Source: Haliotis rufescens
Taxonomy: Eukaryota
Direction: 5' to 3'
DNA length: 64,000 nucleotides
Assembly (NCBI RefSeq): GCF_023055435.1
Contig: NW_025963891.1
Span: 7,936,001-8,000,000 of the forward strand
Position 1 is the first letter of the stretch, and each line of letters begins with the position of its first letter. Made by a program: the position numbers and the translations under genes. The notes beneath the pieces are model-generated. The model worked only from the letters and a program-made list of their open reading frames with translations, searched no databases and was not told the origin of the DNA. Positions 107-56,968 of the stretch are shown here, piece by piece.

Positions 107-1306
107 TTAGAGGAGTAGAATACAGAGAGTAATGCCACAACCTACGTTGAGGAACATGAATAGTCTTAGACAGAGGGCATCAAGCACATCAGAAACATCC
201 TTCCAGGCCACGCTGATAACAGGTTTCTCTTCTCTGTCGTTATCCCCATGAAGCTCCATTGTATCTGACGTATCTACCTTCATGTTTGGCTTCTGTGGAG
301 AACAGCATCTCAACAAGGTGACACATCTCTGCACAATTACAGGTACTTTACCTGTCTTCCGATGCACCCTAAGGATGATGATTGACATGGCCACAGAGAG
401 TGAGCTGAGTGTGAGAAGAATGGTGAGGTAGATGGTGAGGTAGGACGTCTGTAGGGATGTTCTTGGCATGTTGTAGGTCATCTGAGTCAGGAACACAGTG
501 AAAGAGAGTAGAACTGTCATGGAAAGCGCCACTTTGTCTCCGTATTCTAACGGCAGAGCAAAAACCAGGGAGCTGAGAAGGGATAGGAGCATGATAGGGA
601 TTATCAGGTTGAAGACATAGTATGCTGGTCGGCGCTTTAAGGTGATAGTAACGCGAAACATAGGATATCCCGCCATCAGAATTTCCTCTGAAAAATCTTT
701 TATTATCCACAATGGATTTCCATCTGTTGATCGGCTAGTGAACGACTTGTTTACTAAAGGTGTAAATCTTGCTTTATCCGGCGGTGTGTGCCAGGTGGAG
801 AGTAATATGGAACAGACCTGAGTATCAAACGGAAAATAGGAAATATCAAATTCACATCGAGTCTTGTAAAGATCTCCATGTCCCCAGCTTACTAAGCCTG
901 TGTTATGTATCAATACAAAGGCAGTTTTCTCCGCAAACATCTTTCTTTCGGTGACCGTATTGAAAATTGTTAAATCAGGAATCCACACACTATCACTAGA
1001 TATACTCAGATTTTCTTGTCCATCAAAGTCAGAAATGTTCCACTTCAGTGAATCATCAACCCATTGGAGGTAATAAAATCCATTGGTGGTCATTGACTGC
1101 TGCAACTCGTTCATTTCCGCTAAATCGAACAAATGAAATTGAATATTGATGTCCATTGCGTCTTCTGTTTCACGAGGAAACACATGTCGATTGTAATCAC
1201 TTAATACATGCTGTAACAGTCTCTTCTGTTCCTGAATCTTGTTGCAATTTATCAGTGTAAGGAAGGTAAAGAATAATTTGAGAAAGAAATGTCCACGGTA
1301 AGTCAT
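107..1306 (-). CDS. Intronless atypical nAChR-like Cys-loop channel subunit (gene 1, about 399 aa)
   Basis: Single ORF with signal peptide (MTYRGHFFLKLFFTFLTLINC), WIPD loop A, Cys-loop CEFDISYFPFDTQVC, pre-M1 LKRRP, M1-M4 and GDK at the M2 start. The ORF is open to 1468, but Met at 1306 precedes the hydrophobic signal and is conserved in the duplicate (ATG at 6795). Confidence 0.9.
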   Translation of the reverse strand: MTYRGHFFLKLFFTFLTLINCNKIQEQKRLLQHVLSDYNRHVFPRETEDAMDINIQFHLFDLAEMNELQQSMTTNGFYYLQWVDDSLKWNISDFDGQENLSISSDSVWIPDLTIFNTVTERKMFAEKTAFVLIHNTGLVSWGHGDLYKTRCEFDISYFPFDTQVCSILLSTWHTPPDKARFTPLVNKSFTSRSTDGNPLWIIKDFSEEILMAGYPMFRVTITLKRRPAYYVFNLIIPIMLLSLLSSLVFALPLEYGDKVALSMTVLLSFTVFLTQMTYNMPRTSLQTSYLTIYLTILLTLSSLSVAMSIIILRVHRKTGKVPVIVQRCVTLLRCCSPQKPNMKVDTSDTMELHGDNDREEKPVISVAWKDVSDVLDALCLRLFMFLNVGCGITLCILLL

Positions 1307-2379
1307 CTCAGCAGTTATCGCTTTCACGTTCGTCGATGCAGTGTCAGAAATCGCGTGTTCATCCATGGACCAGTGTTCTATATACATACAACACCGTTTA
1401 AACTCAAAGTTGGGTTTGTGGTAGTTATCTGTGGAACAGTTGTTTGTCAAGCAATTTACAACATACATCGATAATATATTTGAATGAAAATCCTTTCAGG
1501 TTTAGATAGAATAAAAAAGGTTATCACATAGTACTTTCCTAACGTGAACCTTTACCAAATAAAGGCTTACAATGGAATAGAGAATAACTCAACTAATGCG
1601 TAAATTAGGAGCAAATAAAAATGATAGGAAAATAAAGCAATGCCATTAGCGATTATTGACTTCTGTGTGACCGAGTGTTTTGATTAAGTGCATCTTGGAG
1701 GCAGTTATCAATAGCTGTCCACCTCCTCACTTTGTCATTGGTTAATGCGAGACTTCAGCTTTATGACGACGACCTGTAAATATTCGAATTTATCATTTAA
1801 CTAAAGCATTTATGCATGACATAAGCATATGAAATAAAAACATGTTTGTCATACCCTAATGACATAAGTATGCAAATTAGATTTGCAAATTAGCATGTGT
1901 TTTTGTACTTTTTTCTAGTTTTGCATGTCACCAAATATATTCACTGAACATTAATACTTTTCAAGTGGGCGATAGAAGGTTTATTTATTTCATGATAAGG
2001 ACCATCTTTGATAAATTGTCCCAAGTGTATGCATACATGACAGGGACTACATGGGCTACCATAATTACAAGATATCTTACATTTCTTCTCAGGTGAAATA
2101 CCATTGTTCAAATTGTGTTGTATTTTTTCTAACTTTTTGGATGGCATAAATGCACATACATTCACAAGATGCAAAATACTATGAGCTTTTAAAGTTCTAC
2201 ATAATATTAATGCATACACAAGGTTAAATGGTACAAATGTACTCTTGATATTATCCACTTGAAAATTCATTAGTTTTAGAGGTGTCAAAATTCCAATAGA
2301 ATCATACCTCTCTTGTCAAATCTCCAGTGGTGTCAGTTCTTTAATCAGGGAGTGCAGAGTCTATTGCAAGACAGAAACG

Positions 2380-3658
2380 TCAGTAACGTGTGTATGATCC
2401 ACGGACATTGACCACAGTTTCAACCCTACGCATCATACTCATTACAAGTTGTTGAATGCTTCTCTGAGGCAAACGGATCCATTCTTCATGAAGTGCGGCT
2501 TCAAGTCCAGCGAGATTTTGAACTGGGGGATCACGATGTCTGATTTTCCGGCCAAGAATGTCCCAGAGTTGCTTAATCAGATTAAGATCCGCACTACAGG
2601 CCGGCCAAGGAAGAGTGGCAATAGCTTCTTGACGGAAATAAGCCAAAACTGCCCGAGATCTGTGTGGTCTAGCATTGTCGTCCATGTAAACAGGTCTTGT
2701 CTGAAGAGGATGGTTGTCTAAATGAGGGACTACCACTGAACGAAGAACGGCATCTTGGTGTTGTTGGCCATTCAGGTTTCCACGAATTGTCACCAGCGGA
2801 AGTTTGCAGCCGACGGAAACACAACCCCATATCATGACAGACCCCCCGCCACATGCTAAGGTCTTCTGGATGTTCCTTGGTGCAAAACGAGTGTTATGTT
2901 GCCTCCAAATACGTATTCGACCATCAACAGTTCGTAGCAGCATTCGACACTCGTCAGACCAATGGATCCTTCTCCAGTTGGCCAAGTTCCATCGACTACG
3001 GTCACGACACCATATCAGACGATTCCGCATGTGCCTCTCAGTCAATTGAGGACGTTTTACTGGTCTTCTGGCGTTATAACCAGCCGCTCTGAGGCGACGC
3101 CTTACAGTCATCGTCGAGAGTCTCTGATGGGTAGTCTTAAATCTGTTGAAGTGGCAAATGGATTTCGTCTGACTATCCTGAAAAGACGTCTATCCTCTCT
3201 GTTAGAGGTCTTTCTTGGCCTACCAGACCTATGCCTGTCATTGACATCATTGGTTTGACCATGTTTGAGAATCAAACGAGTGATAACACTTTGATGACGA
3301 CCCATTTGTCTTGCAATGGCCCTGCATGACATGCCAGCATTTTTCATGCCTATCACTTGCCATCTTTCGGCGTTCGTTACCTTTCTTCTCACCATGGCTG
3401 ATTTTCAACCTCTATGGGAAGGGGAATCTCACATAGGAGCAAAATGCAACCGAGCGTCTGAAACTTGAATTTCACTATTTATAGGGTAGGGGAACTGCAG
3501 CAACACGTAAAGCACGCTTTCATTGTCATCTGGACAAATTTGGGTTCGTGAAACTATGGAAGCCTAATTCATACATAATCATATTTCGTATTTCTGATTC
3601 CCACACGTGAAATCAAAAGACTATGAATATGGTGGCGCTTAACTTTTGTACATGTGTA
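2380..3658 (-). mobile_element. Tc1/mariner (DD34E) transposon, inactivated
   Basis: Transposase is split by a frameshift near 3110: HTH part 3108-3395 (SGRPRKT), catalytic part 2380-3111 (WSDE, MDDNARPH, SADLNLIK with E>K at the D34E position, GSYTRY end). Tc1-like end at about 3630-3658; no matching left TIR found. Confidence 0.85.
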
Positions 3659-5660: not shown

Positions 5661-5737
5661 GTGAAATGATTTGAATTTGGAAAATGAAAAATGTCTTATG
5701 GATATATAATAATGTGCACGTTTAATAACTGATACTG

Positions 5738-6795
5738 TTAGAGGAGTAAATACAGAGAGTAATGCCACAACCTACGTTGAGGAACATAAAGAGTCTTAGA
5801 CAGAGGGCATTAAGCACATCAGAAACATCCTTCCAGGCCACGCTGACAACAGGTTTCTCTCTTCTGTCGTTATCCCCATGAAGCTCCATTGTATCTGACG
5901 TATCTACCTTCATGTTTGGCTTCTGTGGAGAACATCATCTCAACAAGGTGACACATCTCTGCACTATTACAGGTACTTTACCTGTCTTCCGATGCACCCT
6001 AAGGATGAGGATTGACACAGAGTGTGAGCTGAGAGTGAGGAGAATGGTGAGGTAGATGGTGAGGTAGGACTTTTGAAGGGATGTTCTTGGCATGGTGTAG
6101 GTCATCTGAGTCAGGAACACAGTGAAAGAGGGCAGAGCTGTCATGGAGAGAGCCACGTTGTCTCCGTATTCTAAAGGCAGAGCAAACACCAGGGAGCTGA
6201 GAAGGGATAGGAGCGTGATAGAGATTATCAGGTTGAAGACATAGTATGCTGGTCGGCGCTTTAAGGTGATGGTAACGCGAATCATAGATATCCCGCCCTC
6301 AGAACTTCCCCTGAAAAATCTTTTATTATCCACAATGGATTTCCTCTTATGTATCGGTCAGTCAGCGACCTATTTATGAAAGGTGCAAATAGTGTTTTAT
6401 CTGACTGTGTCCCAAGTGGTGAGTGAAATGGAACACACCTGCGTGTCAAACGGAAAATAGGCAACATCAAAGTCACACTGAGTCTTGTAAAGATCCCCAT
6501 GACCCCAGCTAACTAATCCTGTGTTATGTATGCATGCACGGGCGGTTTTCTCCTCAAACATCTTTCTTTCTGTAACCCTGTTTATAACTGTTAAGTCAGG
6601 AATCCACACACTATCACTTGATATACACAGATTTTCTTGTCCATCAAAGTCAGAAATGTTCCACTTCAGTTAATCATCAACCCATTGGAAGTTAAAAAAA
6701 CAACATTGGTGGTCATTGACGGCTGCAACAGGTTCATTTCATCAGTGCCGGGAAGGTAAAGAATAAAGTGTGAAAAAAAGTCCACGGTAAGTCAT
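5738..6795 (-). pseudogene. Pseudogenised duplicate of gene 1 (nAChR-like)
   Basis: Colinear with 107-1306. Has a roughly 130-nt N-terminal deletion near 6740, frameshifts near 6405, 6285 and 5748, and a TGC>TGA stop at 5935. ORF fragments encode WIPDLTVIN, CDFDVAYFPFDTQVC and LKRRPAYYVFNL. Confidence 0.9.
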
Positions 6796-8302
6796 GTTAG
6801 CAGTCATCACTTTCTCCATTCTCGTGATTCGATGCAGTGTCAAAATTCGCGTGTTCGCCATATGTACCGATGTACGAAGCTATCTGAAAACAGCCAACAC
6901 TGTATTCAGTGAGATCCATCTAGTATTGATCAGTGTTGATTACGCCTGCTTTTAGCATATATGCATGGATCCAAAAGCATATGCACAAGCAGTATGGTTG
7001 ATCATAGCATAAGAACAAAATGTAAAAAACATTTTAATTCACTGTTGATAACATCTTAACAGTAACGGTTGACATTCAATTTTCATTTTTGAATACCTTT
7101 ATTTACAATGTGGTTCACTTGTTTGAGAAACACCTAAAGCTTACCAACAAACACTGACAATTCCTGAATCAACCGCCACCTCTGTGATCAGTGTGACCTT
7201 TAGATGCATGTTTGACCTGTATCCAAGTTATGCACCATTTTGCCATTCCACCACCCCTGGAGCTTCTCGTCTAATTGGTGTGGGTGAGAGTGGGTATGCG
7301 GACTGTTGTGTTGTGGGGACAGTGTACTATATAGTTCAGAGATAAGCCGGTGTATATTGCCTGTGATATATTGTCATCAACTTGAACTTTAATGTGGTTG
7401 GATGTACATTATTAGAGGGTGGACCCCCTTGTCTATAATTACAAAACAAAGTATCTACTCCGTACATTCATATACGTACGGCCATGAAATACGATCTTAG
7501 ACAAAAACACAACATACAAACAATAGAATGTTAATCTTATTATTATAACTGTGTATCAGGTATAAAAGCGTGAATGATGGATATGCAATTTAGCATATCT
7601 TGGGGTACCTGACCTGAATATTATTACAAAGAGAATAACAAGTCTTGGCCATTCGCAGAGAGAGATTCAATTAGGCATAAAATTAAAAATAGCCATGAAA
7701 ATTAAATGAATGGACTACTGAAAAACAGTGGTGACACCAGGTGTTTGCGAAAAGGGTCAGCATGTCCTGCCCTACAGGTAGCACCACACTATAGGGGGGT
7801 ACGATGGCAGCCAAGTCACCAAGCCTGACAGCCAGGCCCAATTTGTTGCATTTTGGACAAACATTGGTTATTGGTGCCAAAAAGTATGGGATAGTGGGAA
7901 TCTTTTGATCTATATATTACTTGCAAATGGAAATGATGTTATCATATCTCCTGGGGAGTTGGCGATCACAACTTATGCGTTTTAATGGTTGGTGTGATGA
8001 GATGGTCGCGCACAGGGTCATTAAATTCGAAATTTGCATTTTGCAGCCAAAGTCACTCAAATCTGGTAAAACCACCTCTGTTGGCCAGACATGCACGGAA
8101 TCTTAGAGACATGCTTCTGATGAGACGACTAATGTCAGCTTGACTCATATTGTTCCAGTCATCATGACGAGTTGTAGATGGATTTTGACTTTGAAGTACA
8201 CGTCTCAGACGTATTCAAAGCGGGAAAGATCAGGAACGAGTGCTGGCCATAGCATGACATGGATGTTTTGTTGTACATCGGTATGGTACCGCTCCTGGCT
8301 TC

Positions 8303-8500
8303 TAATTGGTCGGTTGGTCTGATGACGTCACTTCCGGTTTCGGTTTGGTCACGTGACTGCGCATGGGCGCAGTATGATGGGTCCTGCGTGCGCATCCAAG
8401 ATGGCGGCATATCCGTTTCCTGTGGCGTACGCCTCCAAGATGGCGTCCCATCCGTTTCAGGTGGCGCGCGCACCTCCAAGAGGGCGTCCCATGCGTTTCC
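8303..8500. promoter_or_regulatory. Dense TF-motif cluster with three 39-41 bp repeats (probable Maverick subterminal/TIR region)
   Basis: ATTGG near 8305, TGACGTCA 8323-8330 overlapping CACTTCCGG 8329-8337, GTCACGTGAC 8348-8357, TGCGCATG 8358-8365, CAAGATGGCG(GC) at 8397 and 8436, CAAGAGGGCG at 8477. Confidence 0.55.
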
Positions 8501-8568
8501 GGGGAAGGGAAAAAAACCAGAGAAGCGGTCGTAAAAGGTGAACAAGATCGACATTGAAAGAAGCGCGT

Positions 8569-8898
8569 CTAAAATCTTTTTTTTTTTGGTTCTAAAAATA
8601 GACGTGGCGGCGGCGGCGGAGGGGAAGGGTGGAGGAGGAGGGAGGAAGGCGGGAAGGGAGTCGGGTTCTTTGTTTTGTTTTGTTTTGTTTTGTTTTGGTG
8701 GGTGGGTGGCGATGGCATGTGGAGATGATAGCTCACTGAGACGAGCTTATCATACACAGTCGACGACTCTGCCACTTTGTTGCTAGGTTGACGTCATATC
8801 GGCGAAGGATCTTGCAACAACATTTCACAAATCATGTCATCGGGTATGGTGATGTGTTTGTCAACTTTGAGGTGTAAGGTTTCGTTCCATAAGGCCAT
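8569..8898 (-). pseudogene. Possible small Maverick ORF interrupted by an in-frame TGA
   Basis: ATG at 8898 reads MALWNETLHLKVDKHITIPDDMICEMLLQDPSPI*RQPSNKVAESS... in frame with ORF 8569-8775. A TTTAAA box lies about 60 nt upstream, as for the ORF starting at 11112. Confidence 0.3.
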
Positions 8899-9874
8899 CG
8901 TGTATTGTAGCCCACTATGACAGTTGTTCGTCTAAGTTAAAAGTCGGTGAGTGGCGAATTTAAAGGTGCTAAAGGTGTTGGCTGAATTCTAAAGGTGAAT
9001 CGACAGGCACAGACATGAACGTGATGTAGGTATATGCCTACGTGATGTACTTCGTGTCACTCCCATGCAAACATGGTGCCACGCGTGACGACAAACAGAC
9101 GTTGACGTTGATCCATAGGATTATTATTATTATTAATTATACCTAGGTGCTGGCACTCGCGTAGGTTGACATGCGTACTGTCACGCGTGTCTCCGTACAC
9201 ACGTCATGTACTACGTGTTTCCATGCAAACGTGATGCCATGCGTGTCTTCAAACACACGTTGATCCACAGGATTAGTGATCTTATTTAGTATATTTTGAG
9301 AATAGAGAGAGAGAGATCGATAGACATACGTGGTGTTTGACTCGTGTCTCCAGGCACAAGTGGTGTTTCACGCGTCTCTATGTATATATATTTATTTTAT
9401 TATTTTGAGACGTACCATGGTGGTGTCACGCGTAGGCGTGTGCCTCCAAGAGGACGAGGGGGAGGGTGTGGGTTCTTTTGGATGGTTGTTGTTTGGGTTG
9501 GCAAAGCAAGCAGGGTGGGTGTCGATTAGTCTGAACACCATGTGGACTCCATCATGTCTTACCAGGCAGCTGATCTTTCAAGCATGGCCTTTCTCTTTTA
9601 TCTATTTTTTATTTTAATTCATCACTTTTTTCTTAACTTTTACAACGAGCATGTGCACTGACATGACAGACGCACAGACAGACAACGTAGACGACATCTC
9701 AACTCAACCTCTACCCTCGGTTCGGCATTCTATTGGAGTTGAGATCAATCAAAACACAAAGAGTCAGTTCAATTTATCCCTGTTTAATAATGAACAACAA
9801 CTTGGATACAGGGCAAACAATGTGAAACAATGCGAAGAATGCGAAAAAGTAGATGACAACCTTCGTCATCGACA

Positions 9875-11112
9875 TCACACAGGTAGCCTGCTCAATGTTG
9901 CAACGAGTGCCGCTGTGGCTGCTTCTGCTGCTGCGTGGAGCGCGTCGAAGAGTTCTGTTAGTGAGGGTGTTGCTACTGGTGCTTCTATTGCTGTGGGGGT
10001 GGTGTCTGCCACTGCTGGTGCCACTGCTGCTGCCACTGGTTTTGGTGTGGGTGCTGTTGATGAGGGTGCTGTGGTGACTGCCACTCGTTTTGGTGTGGGT
10101 GCTGCAGCATCTGAGGGGTCCATCGGTGATGGTGAAGGTGGTGGTGATGATGACTGCGCTGAAGTTACTCCTGTTACTACGGTGACGAGTGCAGCTGTTA
10201 CTGCTTCTACTGCTGTGGGTGTGGCGGCTGTGGCTGTGGCTGTTGCTGCTGCCCAGGATAGTGCTGAGGCGAATTTTTTGTTGCTGCTGCTTCTCGGGGT
10301 GTCCCCTTCAATGCCCTCACACCTGCCGCGCATTGCGCCATCTGTGGTGCATTGATGAATACTTTTAGTCAGGGTGTTGTTGCTGCGTCTGCAGCTGCAT
10401 CTTCTTCTTCCTGTGTGGTGGCTGCTTCTGCTGCTGCTACAGGTGTTGTTGATGGTGTTGTCTGCGATGAATACTGCTGCAGCAAGGGTGCATGTGAGGT
10501 TACTATTTCAACGAGTGCTACTGCTGCTGCTTCTATGGCTGCAGGTGTTGCTGCGGCTGATGCTAGTATCGCTGTCCATAGTGCTGAGTCGAGTTGTTGT
10601 GCTGTTTTCACTGCTTCTGAGGGTGTTGTTGTTAGTATGGGTGCTGCTTCTGCCGCTGCTGACGCTGCAATGAGTGCTGAGGTGAGTACGTCTGTTTCTT
10701 TTAACGTTCCCTCTGCTACCACTGTGGTAAGTGCTGTGACGTGTGGTGCTGCTGCTTTTTGGGCTGCTTTGAGTATGGATGTTGTGAGTGCTGCTGCTTC
10801 AGGTGTTGGGGTTGACTTTTCCACGTAGAGTTCCATGCTGGGGATGCAGATGCCATACTCCGGAGGCAGAAATGTGTCCACAACACTCTTTAACTTCTCA
10901 TGCATGCAGTCATGGGAAGCTTTGTACAAGGCACTTGCTCTCATCATCTCCCAATGTAGAACTAGCCGCTCCCCCAGGATGTCCGCCATTGCACGACTGA
11001 AATGCTCGCTATTGAGAACGTCCTCGTCCTTGTCCCCCTTCTCCTTCTTCTTCTGTTTGATGATGATGCGGTAGTGGCCATTGTTGTCATACGGTAGTAG
11101 TAGTCGGAACAT
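9875..11112 (-). pseudogene. Maverick accessory gene, Ala/Thr-rich protein of unknown function (disrupted)
   Basis: ORFs 10369-11112 and 9875-10333 join into about 410 aa if one TGA (10369) is read through and one base is added in the A-run near 10275. Upstream TTTAAA (about 11172) and CCAAT boxes (about 11200, 11224). Confidence 0.55.
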
Positions 11113-11452
11113 GATGGTGTTGTTGCTTGGACCGTTCAGTGAAAAGTGATGGCCAGGGAACGTTGGTCGTATTTAAAGACACTGACTCTCTGCTTTCTTA
11201 TTGGTGGAAAATCCGACCTTCTGATTGGCTGGTTTCTGTCCCACACGCCACCCAGGGTACGTCCTTAGTGTTTCTTTTCCAAAGGGTCAGGCTTGTAGCG
11301 TGAGAGAGAGCACAACCTCGTTTCGGCCCATTAGAGTCCACCATGGCCCGAGCCCCGCCTATGATGGGTCGACAATCCAGGCTTCTGATTGGTCAGATTT
11401 CGATCCGTTTTTTTCCATGTCGATTCAGTTTCGATCCGTTGTCATGAATTTT

Positions 11453-13792: not shown

Positions 13793-13896
13793 TTGTCTGG
13801 TCCAGACTCGATTGTTTCACAGACCGCCGTCATATAGCTGGAATATTGCTGAGTGCGGCGTTAAACAACAAATCAATCAACCAACCAACCAACCAA
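13793..13896 (+). mobile_element. SINE 3' fragment truncating pPolB
   Basis: gtctggtccagactcg...cagaccgccgtcatatagctggaatattgctgagtgcggcgttaaacaac followed by (AACC)n; same family as 15708, 20325, 23572, 36940, 50863 and 57953. Confidence 0.8.
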
Positions 13897-17429: not shown

Positions 17430-17660
17430 TGTTAAAACAAGCACTGGTCGGCTCGGGGTCAGTATACTGTGTCTGAGTGGGGTATTCAATTTAAACTGCG
17501 GCATGGTATCTCAGTGGGCTAGCACTATAATCGACATTAGTCCGGACTAGTACAAGCACACACACACACAAACATGCATGCACGCACGCACGCACGCACG
17601 CACGTCGCAATATAAGTGCAATGATCTTGAACGCGACGTTAAACCCCATTTCACCACACG
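17430..17660 (+). mobile_element. SINE fragment with internal (CA)n/(CACG)n tract
   Basis: actggtcggctcggggtcagtatactgtgtctgagtgggg...gctagcactata central domain resembles mollusc SINE cores; cgacgttaaacccc tail. Confidence 0.45.
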
Positions 17661-17689
17661 TCCCAGCTGATATCTTTTTTGTTTTTTTA

Positions 17690-18030: not shown

Positions 18031-18068
18031 TTCATTTGGGACACAGGCGTCGATGCAATAATACATTT

Positions 18069-23571: not shown

Positions 23572-23772
23572 TTTTTGTTTTGTTTTTGTTGTTTAACGCC
23601 GCACTCAGCAATATTCCAGCGATATTGTGGCGGTCTGTAAATAATAAAGCCTGGACCTGACAATCCAGTGATCGACATCATGAGCATCGATCCACTCAAT
23701 CGGGGTACGATGACATGCATCAACCAAGGCAGTGAGCCTGACCACCACGTTAGTCGCCTCTTACGACAAGCA
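23572..23772 (-). mobile_element. SINE (family with LINE-like head)
   Basis: Same family as 20325-20592. Confidence 0.75.
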
Positions 23773-40930: not shown

Positions 40931-41422
40931 TGTGAATTCCCCCAGCACAGCACAGCTTAGATTATTCTTGTAATAGTCAGCTTCAAATGCTTCATGGTTT
41001 CAGAAGAATTCTCAGTATTGTAATGTTTACATTGGACAAACGACGAAGACTACACGCCACACAATAGGAACACTCAATTAACAATTAAAGGTTGTTTTGT
41101 ATTCAGAAGGTGGTTTAGACATACATTGTTGACTAAAATGGATAATTGGGGTTTTGCAATAAATGACCTTGCTTATTGAAAGTCATTGTACTCTGATGGC
41201 ATAGACCATGACATAAAGTCATGTTGAAGCATAATAATTTAAAGACCGATTTAATGTATGTATGATGTATGATGTTCATAGTTTAATTAGATAAACAATT
41301 TAAGCATTTACAGATCAAGTTGGGAAGGTGTTGCATCGAGGTCTTCGCCAATAGAGGGTTATGTGTCCATGAATTGGTTCATTTTGGATTTCATGCAATA
41401 ATAGTAAAAGATTTTTACCTTT

Positions 41423-44372: not shown

Positions 44373-44637
44373 AGGGGCAGGGGTGGTCCAGTCATCTAAG
44401 GCGCCGCGATTCGCTGTGCAGAGTTGCACGCCAGGAACCTATGTTTGTGGGTTCGAATCCCGGTTCGCCCCGATTATGTTTCTAGGTTTGTCAGCACCAT
44501 ACCCGTGCTCGTGGGTCTCACCGAAGTGGTAAACGTTTGACACCTGCATTACTTCGGGCTTTCCTCCCACACTGAGCTGCGATATAACTGTAATACTGTT
44601 AAAAGCGGTGCTCAACCAAACTCACTAACTCACTCAT
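44373..44637 (+). mobile_element. tRNA-derived SINE (15048 family)
   Basis: Paralog of 29992-30263; B box GGTTCGAATCC. Confidence 0.8.
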
Positions 44638-44740
44638 TCTTAGAAAATGTGTATTCGGTGTTTTGTCTTGTCTTGAGTCAATTGAAGTGCTTTGATCTTC
44701 AAAAAATGAACTATCATGACAAAATTGTCAAAACATTAGT

Positions 44741-44798
44741 GGCACTCGTGAAGAGCAACCTCCCCGTGGTGAGTGCTTGGTAACGCTAATAGCTCTTC
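44741..44798 (+). ncRNA. Candidate minimal HDV-like ribozyme (second copy)
   Basis: Identical to 30863-30920. Confidence 0.7.
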
Positions 44799-47700
44799 CC
44801 TCGTGTGGAACCGGGGTAGAATTTGTCCACAGCACCCCGTTGCTGGTCGTAAAAGGCGACCAAATTGGGCAACCCGTTTGCCGTGGGTTGCGCCCCTGTG
44901 TCGGTGGAGGACGGGATTCTGGTGGTTGATGGCACTGGAGCCAGGAACAGGTGTTCCTTTTGCCAAACTTACCACTTTGACCCTTACTACACCTAGACGG
45001 GTGGTTGAATTGGCCCGAATCAAAGGAAATAAATTGTTTATCATAAGATATGATTATGTTATTAATGCCAATTTATATTTTGCCTAGAGTCTTATGCCAG
45101 AAGGCGGTGGCTCATGGGCCAATCTGGTGATACGGACCGCTGAATTCTGTGTTTTTATAGGAAAATGCCATGGGCCGAATCAGCCTGACATTTGTCCTTT
45201 TATTAACAACAGCTTTTCATGTCTTTATTTCTGGAGTATAAAACCCCTGTAACCCTGGTGTTCCAGACTGGTTTCCACTGTGGCACTGCCCTTGTTGACA
45301 CTCGATGGCGGGTGCGGAGCAGGGGTGCTGAAATATTTTCTTACAACATGGCTTTCAATCCTCATTCTGGTTCATCTAAAACAAACAAACGCAGGCATAT
45401 AGATTCTCTTTCATCTGATGAAGATGTCCCTTTACTTCACAGGTAACTGACTCATGGCCAAGGTTCATTGTCAAAAAAACTCAATCCTTTTGCAATCTCA
45501 AAGGGAATACAAAGTATTTGTGGGGAAGTAAAGAACGTCATACGTTTACGATCTGGCTCAATCCTTGTGGAATGTGATCGGAGGCAGCAATCTGTTAATC
45601 TGCTGGGTCTCCAGCAGTTTGTTAACACAAAGGATGTGGTTTCTGAACACAAATCCCTGAATTCAAGCAGAGACATTGTGAGAGATCGTGCTCGCTGTTC
45701 ACGTTTTCACTTTCAACTCTCCCCAAATCAATCAAAGCTGGTTACTTTTCCATCGGAGTGGAGGTTTATGTTCCAAATCCACTCTGGTGTTACAAGTGTC
45801 AGAAATTCGGTCACGGGGCTAAATTTTGCACTGCCAAGACAAGATGCTTCCGTTGCAGCAGATCTCATGAAAGCTCAGATTGCACAAATGACATCAAATG
45901 TGCCAACTGTGACGGAAAGCACTTGTCTTCATCCAAATCCTGTCCGGTTTTTGAACGCGAAACTAAAATACTAAAACTTAAATGTACAAATAGTTACTTT
46001 TTCCATCCCTCATTCCAAACAATAAAACCTATTCAGCTACTGTATCTTCCACCAAACCAGCTCCCACAATGTCAACGGCATCTACTCAAACAGACATCTC
46101 TTGGGTACAGGCTGACCTCATAAACCTTGGTGACCAATTGACAACTGCTTCTACAACACAGTCTAAGCCTTCAGAACCAGACAAGATACATGAAATTGAA
46201 AATGTTCAGGGTAAAGCCAATTTGTCCAAAAAACAAACAAAAAAGCAAATGAGAAGGGCCAGGGCACTTCAGCACTTGGAGGTGCCTTCTCCTACAAATA
46301 CCCCTGTAGAGGTTCATAACCCTTTTGAACCTTTGGCGATGGATGCTGTTCTCTAAGCCCCAGTCCATGGGAAAGGGTTTATCTCGCTCACGATCTCCAG
46401 TTGAGCCACCATGAACGGCTCTAATAAAATTATTTAGTGGAATTGCAGAGGGCTAAAGAATAATTTTAATGATTTACAGTTATTAATACTAGATTTTAAA
46501 CCATCAGCATTTTGTTTACAGGAAACTTTTTTTAAAGATACCGACCAACTCCAGATAAGATGACATAATTCATATAACAATTTCTCTTTTCCAGGACCTA
46601 AAGTCACTGGAGGATCTTCCGTATTGGTAAGGCAGGGTGTTATACATAGCCCTGTTCCTCTAAATACACCCCTTCAAGCTGTTGCTGTTCGGTTTACTGT
46701 AAACATTGTATTTACATTATGCTCACTTTATGTTCCTCCATCTTCTCATCTTCAACAAACTGATCTTCAAGCACTATATGACCAGCTCCCCAAGCCCTGT
46801 ATCATTATGGGCGACTTAAATGGACATAATCCACTTTGGGGAAGTGCTGATTCCAAACGGAAAGGGAAGATACTAGAAGATTTCATTTGATAACGCTTTA
46901 TGCATTTTTGATGATAACTCTAAAACCTATTTACATCCTGGTACAGGCACCTATCCCCCACTTGACTTATCACTTACAACCTCAGATTTACTTAATGAAT
47001 TCGAATGGTCAGTCCACGACGACCTCTGTGGAAGTGACCATTTTCCAACTATTCTTCAAACAATAGCCCCTACTGATAATCCTCCATCATCTAGATGGAA
47101 TTTCACAAAAGCTAACTGGTAATTGTTCGAGTTACTCTGTAAGAGCAAATTAAATCCTGATCGTTTTGTTGATGTTCCTGATTCATAAAAGTGTTCTCTG
47201 ATGAACTAAACAAAAAAGGTGATGAATGTATCCCCAAGTCCTCTGCAAATCCACACATTCGTAAACCATGGTTTATGATACGTGCAAGCAAGCTAGAAAG
47301 GCACGGAAGAAATCCGAACATTATTCCCGTCGCCATCCTATGGTGCATAATTTAAATAAATTCAAAATTCTAAATGCTAAAAAGCGGCGTACATTTAAGC
47401 AAAATAAACGTATGTCTTGGCAAGCTTACGTTTAAAAAATAAATTCACGAACGCCGATGGCCAAGGTATGGAACATGATCCAGAAAATCAAAGGTAAGGG
47501 ATATAAATCTGGCATTCACAATCTTAAGAATGGAAATGAGTTGTTAACTGATAAATCTGATATTGCAAATAAACTGGGTGAAACTTTGGCCAAACATTCT
47601 TCCTGTTCCAATTATGTGCCTCAATTTAAGAAATACCAAAAGCAGCAGGAAAAGAAAACTATTCATTTTAATTCAGATAATGGGGAAGATTACAATGAAA

Positions 47701-50579
47701 TATTTTCTATTCATGAACTACATACTGCCCTCGGACAATCTCACGATACTGCTACTGGAGCTGATAACATACATTATCAACTCCTGAAGCACTTACCAGA
47801 ATCATGTTTACAATCACTGTTAAATATTTTGGATGAAATTTGGACGTCAGGACGATTTCCACCGTCTTTGCGTGATGCAATTGTTGTTCCAATACCTAAA
47901 CCAGGACGTGATCACACAGATCCATCAAATTATCGACCAATTTCATTGACAAGCTGCGTTTGCAAAACCATTGAACGCATGATAAATAATCGACTTGTTT
48001 GGTACTTAGAAACCAATAATCTCATTACAAATATACAATGTGGTTTCCGTACAGAAGTACTATCGATCATTTAGTACGTTTAGAATCATTTTTTAAAAAT
48101 GCCATAATAAACAAACAATATGCAGTGTCTATCTTTTTCGATCTCGAAAAAGCATATGACACTACATGGAAACATGGTATTTTAAAAGATTTACATAACT
48201 TTGGATTGCGACTTTTTAACAGACAGACAATTTCAAGTCCGCGTGGGCACTACCCTGTCTGATCATTATAATCAGGATCAGGGCGTCCCACAGGGCAGTA
48301 TTTTGTCTGTCACATTATTCAGCATAAAGATCAATAGTTTAACGAAAGTTTTAAATGATTCAATTGATGGATCACTTTTTGTGGATGATTTTAATATTTC
48401 CTGTCGTGGCAAAAACATGCATACAATCGAAAGGCAACTGCAGCTATGTTTAAATAAAATCCAGAAATGGTTCTTGGCAAATGGATTTAAATTCTCAAAA
48501 TCTAAAACAAACTGCATTCATTTTTGTAGAAAATAAAAACTGCACAAAGATCCGGAACTTATTTTAGATAACACTCCTATTACAGTTGTAAAAGAAGCCA
48601 AGTTCCTGGGTATAATTTTCTATCACCATTTGACTTTTCTGCCTCACATTAGATATTTCAAGAATAAATATCTGAATGCCCTGGATTTACTGAACGTTGT
48701 CTCAAATTCTAAGTGGGGAGGAGATAAGAAAACCCTCCTTCAACTATACAGAGCACTTATCCGCTCCAAATTAGAATATGATTCCATCATTTTTGGTGGA
48801 GCTTGTAAAAGCAGTTTAAAAATTCTAGATCCTATTCACCATCAAGGCCTGAGGCTTTGCCTTGGAACCTTCAGAACTACTCCAATACAAAGTCTGTATT
48901 TTGAGGGCTGATGAGCCGTCCCTTAAACAACGTCGCATTAAATTGTCTTTGCAATATGTATCTAAATTACGTCCTTTGAAATCAAGCCCAGCTTATGATT
49001 GTGTTTTTAATCCTCTATACAAAAATCTCTACCGAACAAAGTCATCTCTTCTTCCACCGCTTGGAATAAGAATAGCATCTCATATTTCTGCTGCGCAAAT
49101 AAAGCTTGAAAACATTGCCCCAAATCAGCTTTTCTCTTCTCCACCATGGCAGTTTGTGAAGCCAGAGGTGTACCTAACATTAACCAAATTAACGAAATCT
49201 GACACAAATCGATATATTTATCAACAACAATATCATGAATTACGCAACACATATGATACTTATTAATCTATATATACAGATGGATCCAAAGATGGTGACG
49301 CTGTTGCCAGCGCAAATGTCGTTGGATCCAGGACTATCCCATCCCACTTACCACTTTACTGTTCTATTTTTACAGCAGAAGCAAATGCTATTTTTAACAG
49401 CACTTAAATACATCAACAGCCAATCTAAACATAAACAGTTCATAATTTGTTCAGATTCTCTTTCTTGCCTCCAGGCTATTAAAACATATCATCCACGAAT
49501 CCACTTATAATTGAAATTATTGAATTGTTTAATGATCTTGCTACTGGCCAATACGACATCGTTTTCTGTTGGATACCCAGCCATGTTGGAATCACTGGGA
49601 ACACAATGGCCGATGCTGCTGCAATAGCAGCACTCAACAAATCCGTGACGCCACTTCGTATCCCGTACACCGATATCAAACCTCTTATCAGATGTTACAT
49701 CCGAGATCGGATGCAAAAGAAGTGGGACACCCAAGTAGGTATCAATAAATTACATGAAATTCAACCAACTATCGGTTACACCTACTTGGGTTGTCAGTCC
49801 AGATTTGAAGAGGTCGTAATGCGAAGATGTCGTATTGGCAATAGCAGATATACACATGAACATTTATTGAAAGGTGAGGATCCTCCATTTTGTATCCCTT
49901 GTGATGAGAGACTGTATTGATTTTGCCATCACAAGGGATAAATATTTATCTTCATCTGTCAAGGATCTTTTTAATAATATTAATTCTCTTTTAATCATTG
50001 GTTTTTTAAAAGAAATAGAATTGTTTGAACGTTTTTGATTAATCTGTTTTTTTAAATTGGTTGATTAAATAAGCAACTGAGATTGTCAGTGGCTGTATCC
50101 TCGAAGGGTGTTAAAGCACTGTAATATTATTGTCCCCCAGAGAGGATACGTAAGTTCCACATCACTCGAAATAAATTTAAGCCTACCACGATTTTGATCG
50201 TAGTATTTTTGTCAGTTTTGATTAATGGCTAAACTTGCATACAGTCGCCAGCGCCTGAAGGGATGGTGTAAATCCTGCTGGAGTCCATGTAGGTAGCAAA
50301 GGTACTATAAGTCCCCATGGTTCCTAGTATGGGGATCTCCCTTCAATTCCTGGCGATCTATAGGCCGTTTTTACAATGTATTGTTATGTTTAGTAACAGC
50401 TTTTTATGGTCACATAATAGTTTTGAAAATTGATATCTGTGATAAGTCTAGTAATTTTACTGTCCTTTGCTGACAGGTTTTTATATAGTCTAAATTAATG
50501 TTTTCTTAATGTATTAATTGCTTTAGTCACGATGTGGCTGAAATATTGCCGAAATATTCACTCACTCACTCACTCACTC
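44741..50579 (+). mobile_element. I-group LINE, inactivated (copy 2, duplicated with its flanks)
   Basis: Colinear with 30863-36658 and has the same flanks. Keeps the ORF1 end and ORF2 start (MNGSNKII*WNCRGL at about 46411) deleted in copy 1; (ACTC)5 tail. Confidence 0.92.
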
Positions 50580-50862
50580 AAGTTTATTTATATCAAGATT
50601 TTCACATGATAAACCACAGAAGTTTACAATCACAAGAGGCAATTATATGTCTTAAATGTGTGGCAGCAGCAATGTCAGTAATAAGAAATAAGAAATGTCA
50701 GTGAAATCATGAATGTCCAGGATTTGTCACTGCCGAATGTCTTGAATTAGACACGTGTTCCGTTCTTGAACCCAGGGAGGAGTGTCGGAGGCTGTGGCAG
50801 GTGCTCGATGTTTTCAGAGAGGTATCCTGTCCGCACTCGGTAATTAGATAATCTTTTGGAGT

Positions 50863-51112
50863 TTTATTTGTTGTTTAACGCCGCACTCAGCAATATTCCA
50901 GCTATATGACGGCGGTCTGTAAATAGTCGAGGCTGGACCAGACAATCCAGTGATTGATATCATGAGCAACGATACACGCAATTTGGATACGATGACATGT
51001 ATCTATCCAAGTCTGCGAGCCTGACCTACCGAACCCGTTAGTCGCCTCTTACGACAAGCATAGTCGCCTTTTACGGCAAGCATGGGTTGCTGAAGACATA
51101 TTCCAATCCCGA
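50863..51112 (-). mobile_element. SINE (family with LINE-like head)
   Basis: Paralog of 36940-37190. Confidence 0.8.
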
Positions 51113-51572
51113 GATATATTTTGACACTAGCTTGGGTTATGTCTAAGGTTAGGGTTATCTTAGTCTGTATGTATTTCTCAGCCCCTCAATCTGAAAGAAA
51201 AGTACAGGGAAGTCACCTAACCTGAAGTACAAATAATTAGGAGCTTTTTTACACTTTGACCAAATTACTTATATTTTCACAAAATGCAGTCCAAAACAAG
51301 TATCCCTAGTCGATGTTGTTATTCTCTTGTATACGTGAAGATTCACAACACAAGTCCGTCTGCGGGTCGATAACTCTTTATTATTTGGTGAGGTCCTCAA
51401 CTGAAGACCATTGATACCAACCACCCATCCCCCTCTGGGTTATAAATCTATGAGAAAGATGCCATATTCAAAAACATTTTGTATGACTGAGCTCATCATG
51501 ACTCGTCCACAATCCGTATGACACGGGGAGATGACTGAAAAGCCAACTGTATGAAGTTTAAGTCCCAACATT

Positions 51573-52045
51573 CTGAGTGAGTGAGTGAGTTTAATTAAAG
51601 TCACGTCGGCAATATTTCAGCCATAATGTGACTTGAACGAGTTGGACAATATTAATAAAAAACTGTCGACGAAGGACAATATAATAACTAGCAATATATC
51701 ACAGATTGACTTAAAACTAGTTCTAGAACATTAAAACTATTTGATCATTTGAATACGACACAATATAAAAATGGGGCTAAAGATCACCAGCAACAAGGTT
51801 AAGGTCACCATACTAGGGACCAAGGGGACTTACGGTACCTCTGCTACCTGCATGGTTCCCCAGAAGGATTTACACCTTTACCCAAGTTACTGGTGATTGT
51901 TGCAAGTTTAACCAGAGATTAAAATCAACAAATATTCTGCAGTTTAAATAGAGGTAGATATAAACATACTTTGAAAGAGGTGGTTTTACATACCCTCTCA
52001 GGGGGACAATAATTTTACGCCCCAACATTCTGAGGACATAACTGG
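51573..52045 (-). mobile_element. Inverted LINE 3'-UTR fragment
   Basis: Paralog of 37653-38130. Confidence 0.75.
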
Positions 52046-53909
52046 CTTTTCACACACCTATAAGTAAATATTGCCTGTCCTCACGTACCTCATAAGGATT
52101 GTGAATGAGGTACCACAGTCAAAAAAATACATCAACAATGGATTTTCAAAGATACATTTGAAGTTAAATTTCGTGTGATGTTTATTATTTGAGGGTGACC
52201 CTTTTTTACAGATACATACGACTACGATATACAATCAATGCCATAAACACATACAACCAATTGAATGTTGATATTGATATATTTACAGTCGAGAATCTGT
52301 CACCACAAGCCAAATAGTAAATATACCACAAACTATAAAGTTGCGTAAATTCGGTGGAAGTATATATTTATGTGCAAGTGCTGGTATAAATCTTATAACT
52401 ATAACTAAATTAGCCCTAGCACATCAATGTACAGCACAGCCATGTTCGTTCCATACCATTACACTCTCATAAAATGAACATTTCTCATCACAATAATTCT
52501 GTCTAAAAGTGTAACTCGCCTCGGGTTGAAAGGCCATCGCACAATCCACCAGCTAACTCTACCGCATAACTATATGGAACCTGGGGGTTCTCCAAGACCC
52601 AAGGCAATGGCCTGATGGCTCTTTATCCCCAGGTGCCTTATCCTTGTGTATTTACAGTTGACATCAATCTTAGAACACGACATGCAGACTGACTGGATGC
52701 TTTTCACAATTTCTGTCTATCATAAATGAATATATACCATACTCTGATGATTACCGAACTGCCAGTTGTATGTGGATACTATATTATATAACATTACAAA
52801 TATTTACATCCGAACATATATCTTTGGATAATACTGTTAAATATCCATTTCACATAAACAACTTGCATCAGTTTGATGTCGTCTTTTAAATGATACAGGT
52901 GTATAATGGAAACGTATGCTACAGCACTTATAATCTGCGCTTATCATGTTATAGCGAGTTCCATCATATGCAGGTAAAAAATAATTATCTAACTAAATAT
53001 TAACTAAACAGCATCACGACACGTTAATTATATTACACACTGATGCATGCATAACTTTGTATGAAAAGGAGCACATTCATATGTCCATGATTGCCATGGC
53101 ACCGGCAGCTTCAGCACGACATGAAGATCAAAGTACGAAGTATTACAACCAAAGGCAAACAGTGACATTGGTTATTTGTTTCACTAAATACTTACTGCAA
53201 ATCAGATTCCATGAAGATACACAACGAAATTTCCATATGCATGCAATGGCAATGTCGAGGAAGTTGGTAACAGGTCCAGTCCTCGAAATTCACACTAACG
53301 TGATTAGTTCATAAGTTAATCTTTTAGAAGATGTCGAAGCCAGGGCCGCATGAAGGTAGCAAAGCAGGACCTTTTGCGAATTAATTTCGATGATTTGCTA
53401 CCTCTACTTAAAAGTTATATTCCATTATGTCTCTGAGATTCTAAAATGATATAATTAAAACTGAAAAAGGTGTTCAAGAACCAAAGAAAATGAACTTCCT
53501 TCCACCATTGCATCATACATTATTTAACTCCAAACAAGTCCTACAAAGTGAACACTTTAATGATTCGATGGCACATTTATCAGACTATGTGATTACAGAG
53601 ATTTGCATACGCATCTGATGGATTTTTTTGGAATATATGATAAAAAGTGGGCAAATTGAAATAATGAACCAGTTGAATACATTTCTGCGTGCATCAAATT
53701 AATCTATTCGTAACATAGTTACTGGAATGATTCACAAACTTCATCGACATGAGCATAGACAAAAAACACCAATTTAGTTGTGTCATTATTCCAACTGTCA
53801 ACTGTCAACCAATATATCACTTTCATTTGTAAGCAAACACTATATGAACTATCTGTTCAAGGCTGTTTCCATTAATGGATAACTTTTAATCCATCACATG
53901 AAGCCAGTC

Positions 53910-54860
53910 TGAAATGGAAACATGTGACAATCATAAATTATTTCTATGTATTCGTAGAATTTCTAAAACATCTGTAAATAAACCTCTTCCCGCTTTGTAC
54001 TGGATTCCCAATCTTTATAAAAATCCATATAATGAGAGAAATAGTGCAGGGTCTGCCAAGGCAAAACTACTATCAATAATTCAGACAGATGGAGTTAATC
54101 ACATATGGCTCTTGAAAGAGTCAAAAGAAATACTGTATATACTGTCAGACCAGAAACACTAATTCAAGTCAAAAATAATTTTAATTTTTTCTCCCTTTTG
54201 CACAATAGTCCCTCACAATAACTTGAAAGGGAACTTGTATTCCCTAAATAGTAGGGATTTTGTTTCAAAAGTAACTTTACTCAAAAATATTCAGATTCAC
54301 AAATAAGTGAGTATGTGGGCTGGATTTCCTGATTGACAATATATTTGTCAAACATGAGGATAGAACATGTCATGGATTTCCTAGTTGATCTGTTTCTCTT
54401 TGCATATGTATTGGAATTTGTTAAATTGTTAACGACTTTAGTTAAATCAATGAAAGGACGCGTTGCCAATAAGTGCAACCTCAGTTTAAGATATATGAAT
54501 GATCTAATTACTTTCAACAATGCCAAGGTAAATGGGTATGTTCACCTCATCTATCCACCATAGCAGTCGGAAAGCAACGAAACGAAGACAAAGGAGAAAC
54601 CATATTCAGAGTCTAGTCTGGATCTGTCCTCAGAAATGCAAACTGATCGCACCCACTGTACAAAGCTGTACGACAAGAGGGGTGGTTACAGATTCCAAAC
54701 GTGAATTTCCCCTTCATGTTGAGGCATACAGCATCAGCTCCATCTACAATTTTCAATTGCTTTGGTAATTTTAATAAAGCATGTACATTTTATTTGATGA
54801 TGATTTATACGGAAAAGGTTGATTAATGGACAAAAGGGGCATGGTACGATGAAGAGCGGA
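53910..54860 (+). mobile_element. Decayed Penelope-like retroelement
   Basis: Paralog of 39980-40930; ORF 54333-54563 ends RYMNDLITFNNAKVNGYVHLIYPP. Confidence 0.7.
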
Positions 54861-55335
54861 TGTGAATTCCCCCAACAAATTTACGTAGCACAGCACAGCT
54901 TAGATTATTCATGTAATAGTCAGCTTCAAATGCTTCATGGTTTCAGAAGAATTCTCAGTATTGAAATGTTTACATTGGACAAACGACAATAGGAACACTC
55001 AATTAACAATTAAAAGTTGTTTTGTATTCAGAAGGTGGTTTTGACATACATAGTTGACTAAAATGGATATCGGGGTTTTGCAATAAATGACCTTGCTTAT
55101 TGTAAGTCATTGTACTCTATTGGCATAGACCATGACATAAAGTCATGTTGAAGCCTAACAATTTAAAGACCGATTTAATGTAAAATTAAACTAAATCAAG
55201 AGTCAAGGAAAACTTACAGAATCAGAAAAAAATCATCAATTCATGTCGACAGATAAATGTTTCATCTCAAACAAAAACATATATGAAACTCCTGACGATT
55301 GAAAATAAACCATTTCTTTCACTTTCATAATTATT

Positions 55336-55616
55336 AGTGAGCGCGTTTGGTTTCACACCGCTTTGATTAGTGTTCCAGTTACATTACGGCATATCAGCTT
55401 AATGTAGGAGGAACGCCCGGGGTGATGCACGTCTCAGACGTTTATAGTTTTTGTGAAACCCACAAGCACGGGTATGTAGCTGACATAACTAGAAATATAA
55501 TCTGGGCAAAACACTCGTTGATTCAACCCACGATCATAGGTTTCTTGCGTGCCCAAGGGACGCAGCTCTGAACAGCAAATTGCGGCGCCTTATACGACGG
55601 GGACACCCGTGACCCC
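55336..55616 (-). mobile_element. tRNA-derived SINE
   Basis: Paralog of 27296-27580. Confidence 0.7.
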
Positions 55617-55783
55617 TTACAATCATGATGTAAGTATTTAAATTAGATAAACATGTACAATTAAGCATTTACAGATCAAGTTGGGAAGGTGTGGCATCGA
55701 TGTCTTCGCCAATAGAGGGTTATGTGTCCATGAATTGGTTCATTTTGGATTTCATGCAATAATAGTAAAAGATTTTTACCTTT

Positions 55784-56968
55784 TCAAATGACAAGGGCAA
55801 AGAAAATAATACCACAACCAACATTAAGCAGAAAGAATAATTTAAGACACAGAGCATCAACTGCAAGTGATACATCTTTCCAGGTGACCACTGTATTGCA
55901 CTTCTTCTGATCAATGTCTTCAACTGGATCGTCCTGTTCATCAGATTCCATTGCATTCATAGGCGGATTAGGAATAACATATTTCCAAAATGTGACATAA
56001 TTCTGCAACACTACAGGTACATCTCCCGTTCTCTGATGGATCTTAAGAATGAAAACTGATATTGCCACAGTAAGGGAGCTGAGAGTGAGGAGCAGGGTCA
56101 TGTAGATGGTGAGGTAGGACGTCTGTAGGGATGTCCTGGGCATGTTGTTGCTCATCTGCGTCAGAAACAAGCTGAATGAGAGGAGAACCGTCATGGAGAG
56201 AGACACTTTATCCCCGTATTGTATAGGCAGAGCAAAGACCACGGAGCTGAGGAGGGACAGAACCATGACAGGGATGATGAGATTGAGGACATAATATGAC
56301 GCCCGACGCTGTAAGATTGCTGTTACAACGATTTCAGGAAATTTGTTATCAGCGGTAGCGGATGACAAAGTTTTAATCTTCCACAGTCCATTCACATTAG
56401 TTGTGACGGTACTGCTGTTTTCATCAATTGAAGGTATGAAACGAGCAGATGTGTTCGTGGTCGTCCACGTGGAGAGATTCAGATGGCAGGTCTGAGTATC
56501 AAATGGAAAATGTGTAATGTCAAAGTCACACTGACTTTGGTAGAGATCCCCTTGTTCCCATTCAACCGTTCCAGAATGATGTACACAAGCAGGCGCATTC
56601 AGATTGTTCAGCAGCTTGCGCTCTTCAACTGTGTTCATGAGCGTTATGTCGGGCATCCATATATTTTCACTTGACATACAGATCATCTCTATCCCTGCAT
56701 AATCCGAAATGTTCCACCTCAATGAATCATCCCGCCACTTAAAGGAAAACCATCCATTTGTGGTCATCGATTGTCGCCTCTCATTAAGCTCCGTAATTTG
56801 CGACAAAGTAAATCTTACGTCTATATCCAACCTGGTTTCACTTGGAAAAACTTGCGGCTCATAGTCATCTTGCAAAAAATGAAGAAGTCTCTTCTGTTCT
56901 TTGATGCTGGTCCCTCCACATAAACAGATCAATGTAGTCAAGCAGATGAAATGTTTGAAGATCACCAT
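55784..56968 (-). CDS. Intronless atypical nAChR-like subunit, paralog D (394 aa)
   Basis: Complete ORF colinear with A; loop E TVEWEQ, loop B TNTSA. Confidence 0.95.
   Translation of the reverse strand: MVIFKHFICLTTLICLCGGTSIKEQKRLLHFLQDDYEPQVFPSETRLDIDVRFTLSQITELNERRQSMTTNGWFSFKWRDDSLRWNISDYAGIEMICMSSENIWMPDITLMNTVEERKLLNNLNAPACVHHSGTVEWEQGDLYQSQCDFDITHFPFDTQTCHLNLSTWTTTNTSARFIPSIDENSSTVTTNVNGLWKIKTLSSATADNKFPEIVVTAILQRRASYYVLNLIIPVMVLSLLSSVVFALPIQYGDKVSLSMTVLLSFSLFLTQMSNNMPRTSLQTSYLTIYMTLLLTLSSLTVAISVFILKIHQRTGDVPVVLQNYVTFWKYVIPNPPMNAMESDEQDDPVEDIDQKKCNTVVTWKDVSLAVDALCLKLFFLLNVGCGIIFFALVI

Follow-up and report, generated by a model that had tools for sequence, protein, structure and literature searches.

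What do the intronless Cys-loop receptor genes that stand in tandem in one stretch of the Haliotis rufescens genome respond to, and how did they come to differ from each other? The stretch (contig C113, positions 7,936,001-8,000,000; hereafter the window) comprises 64,000 nucleotides (nt) without any N, and a first reading made without database searches (the sequence-only reading) had seen in it an expanding cluster of candidate chemosensory receptors from a probably non-cephalopod mollusc. The analysis reported here identifies the array as a young, still-changing and abalone-specific set of intronless, non-alpha genes related to nicotinic acetylcholine receptors (nAChRs), one of many such arrays in this genome and of a kind already published. 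As to function, we lean modestly toward orphan ligand-gated cation channels, whose binding pocket has departed from acetylcholine (ACh) and differs between paralogues.

Fourteen open reading frames (ORFs) of at least 200 amino acids (aa) are listed in the window, which contains five intact Cys-loop receptor genes, each a single ORF on the minus strand, one of them of A type and four of B type. All five match the Pfam families Neur_chan_LBD (E 1e-38 to 1e-41) and Neur_chan_memb (E 1e-13 to 1e-16). The B-type genes, B1 (18069-19253), B2 (27742-28926), B3 (41423-42607) and B4 (55784-56968), are intact single-exon coding sequences (CDSs) of 394 aa each, whose proteins are mutually 95-97% identical and 51% identical to A. 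The A-type gene (107-1306) is an intact single-exon CDS of 399 aa when counted from Met55 of an open frame that extends upstream to 1468; 107-1306 is most likely the true CDS because the upstream paralogue L005 begins at the equivalent of this Met55. Untranslated regions aside, the coding part of each gene is one uninterrupted frame from the signal peptide to a stop past the fourth membrane helix (M4), as the sequence-only reading had maintained. A search by tblastn with A as query located a pseudogene on the minus strand at approximately 5731-6856, which has 89% nucleotide identity to A and carries five in-frame stops, frameshifts and an internal deletion of ~127 nt. The count of five intact genes and one pseudogene, their common orientation and their division into two subfamilies, all claimed before any search, are thus confirmed by Pfam and tblastn.

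The window holds the B end of a larger cluster. The window is preceded, at distances of 16 and 25 kb, by two further intact A-type genes, so that the whole cluster spans ~82 kb and comprises seven intact genes besides the pseudogene, with the minus strand carrying them all. A third subfamily, C, is found at 10.03-10.07 Mb of the same contig and is 47-50% identical to B. The proteins of the adjoining paralogues L005 and L010 are identical to the NCBI H. rufescens proteins P0006 and P0008, respectively. The NCBI models P0180, P0177, P0178 and P0001 correspond to B1, B2, B3 and B4 shortened to 300 aa and beginning at Met95 (P0180 is B1 residues 95-394). The H. cracherodii orthologue is likewise annotated with 300 aa from Met95, and these models lack the signal peptide as well as the first strands. 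A 94%-identical protein from a public-run assembly contig (Logan), P0181, keeps the full 394-aa B frame, as does H. rubra P0002 (393 aa).

The AlphaFold2 model of B1, built from 85 sequences with a mean predicted local distance difference test score (pLDDT) of 87, shows a signal helix, a beta-sandwich ectodomain and helices at residues 223-246, 253-273, 285-312 and 363-393, the last being M4. M3 ends at 312 and M4 starts at 363, and the loop of ~50 residues between them, which includes a short helix (319-331) and then a disordered stretch, bears out the earlier remark on a short M3-M4 loop. The Cys-loop residues C147 and C161 are invariant, with the two Cys 13 residues apart. The M2 helix begins with Gly-Asp-Lys, placing an acidic residue at -1', and has Leu at 9', a combination that predicts a cation channel. 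The top structural matches of the model are nicotinic receptors, including human alpha7 (8ut1; Z 29.4, root-mean-square deviation 2.3 over 343 residues, 28% identity) and the muscle epsilon subunit (Z 30), while a search of the ESM Atlas gave a family assignment only. No gap interrupts the HMMER alignment of B1 with human alpha4 between loop E and loop B; together with the motif positions, this alignment fixes the residue equivalences of B to alpha7 (W73 = W55, S75 = Q57, M111 = Y93, C147 = C128 and W168 = W149).

With these equivalences the agonist site can be read residue by residue. The vicinal Cys-Cys of loop C is missing in A, in B and in all 26 of the intronless ORFs aligned from the same genome, and is present in the canonical rows P0094, P0084 and P0072; loop C itself is 7-8 columns shorter than in the canonical subunits aligned. 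Both subfamilies depart from the canonical aromatic box, which consists of Tyr in loop A, Trp in loop B, two Tyr in loop C and Trp in loop D. The B type has Met in loop A, Trp in loop B, Phe for the second loop-C Tyr and Trp in loop D, whereas A has Phe in loop A, Trp in loop B, Tyr at the second loop-C position and Phe in loop D; the first loop-C Tyr is missing in both, and the loop-A residue across A-type subunits is Phe or Ile. The remodelled agonist site of the sequence-only reading was therefore recovered in the missing Cys-Cys, the shortened loop C and the replaced loop-A Tyr. "Non-ACh-type" is a fair description of the site as judged from these residues, but it would equally describe a non-alpha subunit.

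To place the locus among its relatives, the genome was searched in six frames with Pfam PF02931, and 150 of 502 candidates were scored. Among those scored, at least ~114 are intact intronless genes (domain covered, open frame of at least 370 aa, no stops) arranged in >20 tandem arrays on many contigs, and 19 other matches to the ligand-binding domain (LBD) are exon-sized pieces of multi-exon genes. Another search of the genome yielded a consistent picture. The locus is in this sense not special, being one of >20 arrays. Rows of exon-sized LBD matches, covering only about positions 90-216 of the profile, were also noticed at C1:75.01-75.39 Mb, C1:67.10-67.30 Mb and C113:3.09-3.85 Mb, which suggests that multi-exon Cys-loop genes are tandemly repeated too in the abalone genome. 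A full HMMER search of 1.84 billion representatives returned 1149 proteins at E<1e-30, none of which outside Haliotis exceeds ~41% identity to B1. Trees were made with FastTree (140 rows) and with IQ-TREE (posterior mean site frequency model, PMSF, C20; 56 rows), cephalopod chemotactile receptors (CRs) not being among the rows. A separate clade with support 99 gathers the canonical subunits, namely an octopus subunit, shark beta1, an alpha2-like subunit of a limpet and an alpha9-like one of a sea cucumber; the octopus row, P0050, matches human alpha4 and alpha7 at E 1e-92 and is itself a canonical subunit. A, B and C together make up a clade confined to Haliotis (100), nested in a 20-row group that is likewise Haliotis-only (98) and sister to genes of limpet, sea slug and whelk in a gastropod-only clade (95), with bivalve and chiton genes further out. 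Orthologues were identified in three other abalones, H. asinina, H. cracherodii and H. rubra. Nesting within conserved canonical clades with one-to-one orthologues, which would have spoken against the sequence-only reading, is thus not what the trees show, and its guess at a non-cephalopod mollusc was correct, the source being an abalone, in line with the tissues that it had suggested for expression work.

Intronless nAChR-like genes have radiated across the genome in a mollusc-specific manner, and the cluster is part of this radiation. Jiao et al. (2019) described such expansions in molluscs, in tandem arrays that arose by retroposition followed by tandem duplication, and counted 99-217 genes in bivalves and fewer in gastropods (PMC6896357). 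Like those genes, the abalone array is nAChR-derived, tandem and highly diverse, with single-exon CDSs and lineage-specific duplication (PMC6896357). It differs from that account in the at least ~114 intact intronless genes of the abalone, in the restriction of A, B and C to Haliotis, and in pocket-focused variation and conversion tracts, on which that account is silent. In the literature no abalone-specific report on these genes was found.

How the copies arose can be followed by comparing the window with itself. The repeated blocks found by BLAST are whole units of 9-14 kb and not genes alone. Unit 1 (17706-26320) holds B1 and is shorter than units 2 and 3; unit 2 (26321-40456) holds B2 and the remnant of a long interspersed nuclear element (LINE); unit 3 (40457-54385) holds B3 and a copy of that remnant; and unit 4 (54386-60451) holds B4. 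Units 2 and 3 are ~96% identical over 8.8 kb of non-coding DNA (96.1% for 32541-41258 against 46468-55182), the start of unit 2 (26321-29058) is 95.5% identical to that of unit 4 (54386-57100), and the flanks of B1 and B4, including the 5' flanks of units 1 and 4, match at 90-97%. Coding identity among the B genes (96.6-97.4%) is near that of the flanks, and synonymous divergence amounts to 0.035-0.07 among the B copies and 0.07-0.12 among the A copies. The remnant is a decayed retrotransposon without long terminal repeats on the plus strand (33173-35959, with its copy at ~47457-49920), recognizable by RVT_1 in two adjacent ORFs and a weak RNase H match. It occurs once each in units 2 and 3 and not in unit 1, and therefore inserted before units 2 and 3 were copied. 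In the tree, the B genes of H. rufescens (four) and of H. rubra (two) fall into different groups, which makes the duplications, or their homogenisation, species-level events. An assembly artefact was considered and rejected, since the units are ~4% different, their transposon content is unlike, four separate NCBI models exist and orthologues are found in other species.

Two short patches stand out against this background. In B2, 11 private nt differences, about half of them synonymous, fall within 51 nt of loop E (28495-28545, minus strand; scan statistic p<5e-5), and in B1, seven private differences, mostly A-type states, fall within 37 nt ahead of and in M4 (18117-18153, minus strand; p about 2e-4). 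From the pattern of differences, the B2 patch looks like a short conversion tract and the B1 patch like a conversion between subfamilies. A donor of the B2 patch was not found in the assembly, where the matches are the four B copies only, at 88-90%.

The pocket loops were set beforehand from the alpha7 positions and the model. In the B quartet, 11 of the 30 variable amino-acid sites fall within them (odds ratio 3.1, p 0.007), and with P0181 added to the quartet the odds ratio is 3.9 (p 3e-4); in the A trio, 24 of 55 variable sites do so (odds ratio 5.2, p 5e-7). Variation is thus concentrated in the pocket loops, as the sequence-only reading had noted. Two other four-gene arrays of the same genome, taken as a control, gave odds ratios of 0.95 and 1.2. 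Part of the B enrichment stems from the 51-nt patch of B2, and without it the signal is weaker (p 0.04-0.06). Among B1-B4, variation is seen at four of the five classical contact positions of the complementary face (75, 128, 136 and 138, that is, alpha7 Q57, L109, Q117 and L119; binomial p 2e-4), and the H. cracherodii orthologue has differences at 128, 136, 208 and 212. Many of the substitutions are radical, such as Ser to Phe or a change of Glu to Val or Ile. The array L019-L028 (C301:0.45-0.50 Mb; at least 10 intronless genes of 409 aa in two alternating subtypes), has a pocket odds ratio of ~1, yet its Q57-equivalent position is variable too.

The ratio of non-synonymous to synonymous divergence (dN/dS) is 0.33-0.45 overall in B pairs and 0.37-0.66 in A pairs, with a marked difference between parts of the protein. 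For the A trio, the pocket has 1.0-1.2, the remaining ectodomain 0.5-0.9 and the membrane and intracellular part 0.15-0.44; for B pairs the corresponding values are 0.3-1.7, ~0.2 in five of six pairs (1.04 in B1-B4) and ~0.4. Over the A and B pairs together, the transmembrane and intracellular part lies at 0.15-0.48 in seven of nine, and two low-count pairs give 0.30 and 1.23. The channel core is under purifying selection and the pocket changes fast, at a roughly neutral rate. Positive selection was rejected as a proven cause, because pocket dN/dS is ~1 and synonymous changes cluster with non-synonymous ones. Diversifying selection in the pocket is possible, and relaxed constraint and gene conversion fit the variation equally well.

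Taken together, these observations support that part of the sequence-only reading which saw a tandem cluster of intronless, non-ACh-type subunits derived from nAChRs and evolving by birth and death. The cluster would grow by unequal crossing-over that copies whole units of 9-14 kb, short gene-conversion tracts would remodel the copies, and some copies would be lost as pseudogenes. From the model and the conserved transmembrane core, the genes are predicted to encode working subunits of pentameric cation channels. The orthosteric site no longer appears tuned to ACh, and the parts of it that change fastest between copies are loop C and the loops D, E and F of the complementary face. The channels may then be gated by ligands other than ACh, probably with a somewhat different specificity for each paralogue, and peripheral tissue in contact with sea water would be their most likely site of action. 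A known counterpart without a known agonist is Alpo4 of Alvinella pompejana (8bx5; PMC10338036), a lophotrochozoan nAChR-like protein that likewise has neither the loop-C Cys-Cys nor an alpha signature. It shares 24% identity with B1 (Z 25) and, unlike the abalone genes, comes from an annelid and is not in a young tandem array as far as described.

Several points weigh against this reading of orphan channels. Ordinary non-alpha nAChR subunits too are without the Cys-Cys and too vary on the complementary face. The loop-B Trp, and in the B type the loop-D Trp, are kept, so a heteromer containing these subunits may still be sensitive to ACh. The NCBI models of B1-B4 have only 300 aa, and the support from annotation for the full ORF is indirect, coming from H. 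rubra P0002 and Logan P0181. No public run recorded as RNA was found to hold the sequence. Pocket dN/dS is not significantly above 1, and Fisher tests of non-synonymous against synonymous changes in the pocket and in the rest reach p<0.05 in one of six.

The first two of these points lead directly to the alternative that survives best, although we regard it as doubtful: that the genes encode complementary, beta-like subunits of ordinary ACh-gated receptors, paired with alpha-type subunits encoded elsewhere, and that variation on the complementary face has no effect beyond tuning the ACh pharmacology of neurons, muscle, ciliated epithelium or immune cells. The absence of the loop-C Cys-Cys and of the loop-A Tyr is shared with the vertebrate beta, gamma, delta and epsilon subunits, which contribute the complementary face, the very face on which the fastest sites of the abalone genes are found. 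The loop-B and loop-D Trp retained in B would suit such a role, and the Torpedo beta and gamma chains are among the best PDB sequence matches of B1. However, with a Cys-Cys in 0 of 26 intronless ORFs of the genome, the partner would have to be the product of a canonical multi-exon gene; every canonical subunit aligned has a loop C longer by 7-8 residues; and the clade is without a one-to-one orthologue outside Haliotis. Canonical genes are multi-exon and have a long M3-M4 loop, a full-length loop C and orthologues across phyla, and the abalone genes have none of these.

Hardly behind it, and to be held just as tentatively, comes the proposal that these are gastropod contact or distance chemoreceptors, convergent with the cephalopod CRs. 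The octopus and squid receptors CRT1 and CRB1 are, like the abalone genes, intronless nAChR derivatives in tandem clusters with ACh-site residues lost, a short intracellular loop and pocket-centred variation; a review counts the lack of introns, the descent from nAChRs and diversifying selection on the pocket among the traits of CRs (PMC11526382). In the abalone genes, however, pocket dN/dS is ~1 and not above, and the B pocket, which retains two Trp and carries Glu residues, is not uniformly hydrophobic. A 2026 preprint sorted 3,586 molluscan nAChR-family sequences into 15 clades, with CR-like members in gastropods, bivalves and chitons, described divergent clades with substituted ligand-binding residues, and proposed these as a possible ionotropic part of gastropod chemosensory organs, raising the same idea (PMC13174522). 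Against it stand the >110 similar genes in the genome and the expression of the bivalve relatives, which is strongest in gill, developmental, and responsive to stress and infection, and is not restricted to sensory organs (PMC6896357). A taste or smell role is plausible by analogy. Its fuller form, in which the A/B cluster and perhaps many of its >110 sister genes are gastropod ionotropic chemoreceptors that arose independently of cephalopod CRs, with paralogues tuned through the complementary face to waterborne or contact cues (algal or settlement), we consider conceivable and rather unlikely.

If the genes are true chemoreceptors, a mollusc-wide radiation would have turned neurotransmitter receptors into environmental sensors more than once, octopus and squid being the known case, and the array would provide candidate receptors for the feeding and settlement cues of abalone. 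The general phenomenon and the chemosensory hypothesis are already published (PMC6896357; PMC13174522). To these the locus adds an abalone-specific clade, a gene count that places a gastropod within the range reported for bivalves, and a clean example of unit duplication and gene conversion reshaping a binding pocket.

We find it improbable that the genes are young duplicates, mostly silent and drifting toward pseudogenes. One copy in the cluster has become a pseudogene, retrogene-type nAChRs of bivalves are more often unexpressed (PMC6896357), and no RNA evidence was obtained. Four public runs, taken as RNA by guess only and picked for holding this CDS, gave contigs of 150-270 nt at a depth of 2-3 on 17650-23400, coding and non-coding DNA alike; they look like low-coverage DNA with ~8% random coverage of the genome and give no evidence on expression either way. 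Drift is countered by the seven other copies, which all keep full open frames, by dN/dS values that are 0.33-0.66 for the whole protein and, for the channel part, mostly 0.15-0.5, and by the orthologues of each subfamily in other Haliotis species.

Membership of the cephalopod CR clade, or a place as its sister group, which the sequence-only reading had entertained, is very improbable: the intronless structure and the molluscan origin are common to both, and the CR-like clade of the preprint has gastropods (PMC13174522), but every named near relative of the Haliotis genes is a gastropod gene, and B1 is closer to human alpha7 than to octopus CRT1 (9e6b; Z 21.9, 25% identity) or squid CRB1 (8eiz; Z 21.6, 20%), both of which also score structurally below the muscle subunits, 5-HT3A and Alpo4. 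The best 60 PDB sequence matches, both for B1 and for a profile made from the mollusc radiation, include 5-HT3A and no CR chain, and a word-based homologue search returned 18 proteins with one query and 27 with the 85-row alignment, no cephalopod CR among them. CRs evolve fast, so these scores fall short of a firm exclusion of a sister relationship.

Other features of the window are mostly mobile or repetitive DNA. Upstream of B1, the intervals 20357-20578 and 20997-21147 are very abundant dispersed repeats: they reach a summed contig depth of 1e5-1e6 in all four public runs, where joints and loose ends are numerous, and they have copies at 36945-37328, 50867-51248 and 57969-58349. Searches with Rfam (gathering threshold) and ARAGORN gave no match anywhere in the window. 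Between the A gene and the pseudogene lies the remnant of a Tc1/mariner-type transposase (2380-3111, minus strand; HTH_Tnp_Tc3_2 and DDE_3). The block at 8000-13800 is rich in G+C (49% against ~38% in its surroundings) and has two minus-strand ORFs (11511-12374 and 12307-13260) matching the organellar/viral type-B DNA polymerase family PF03175; it may be the remnant of a Maverick/Polinton-like or other polB-carrying element. Directly downstream of B1, a satellite occupies 16715-17352 with ~9 copies of a 70-nt unit at 93% matches.

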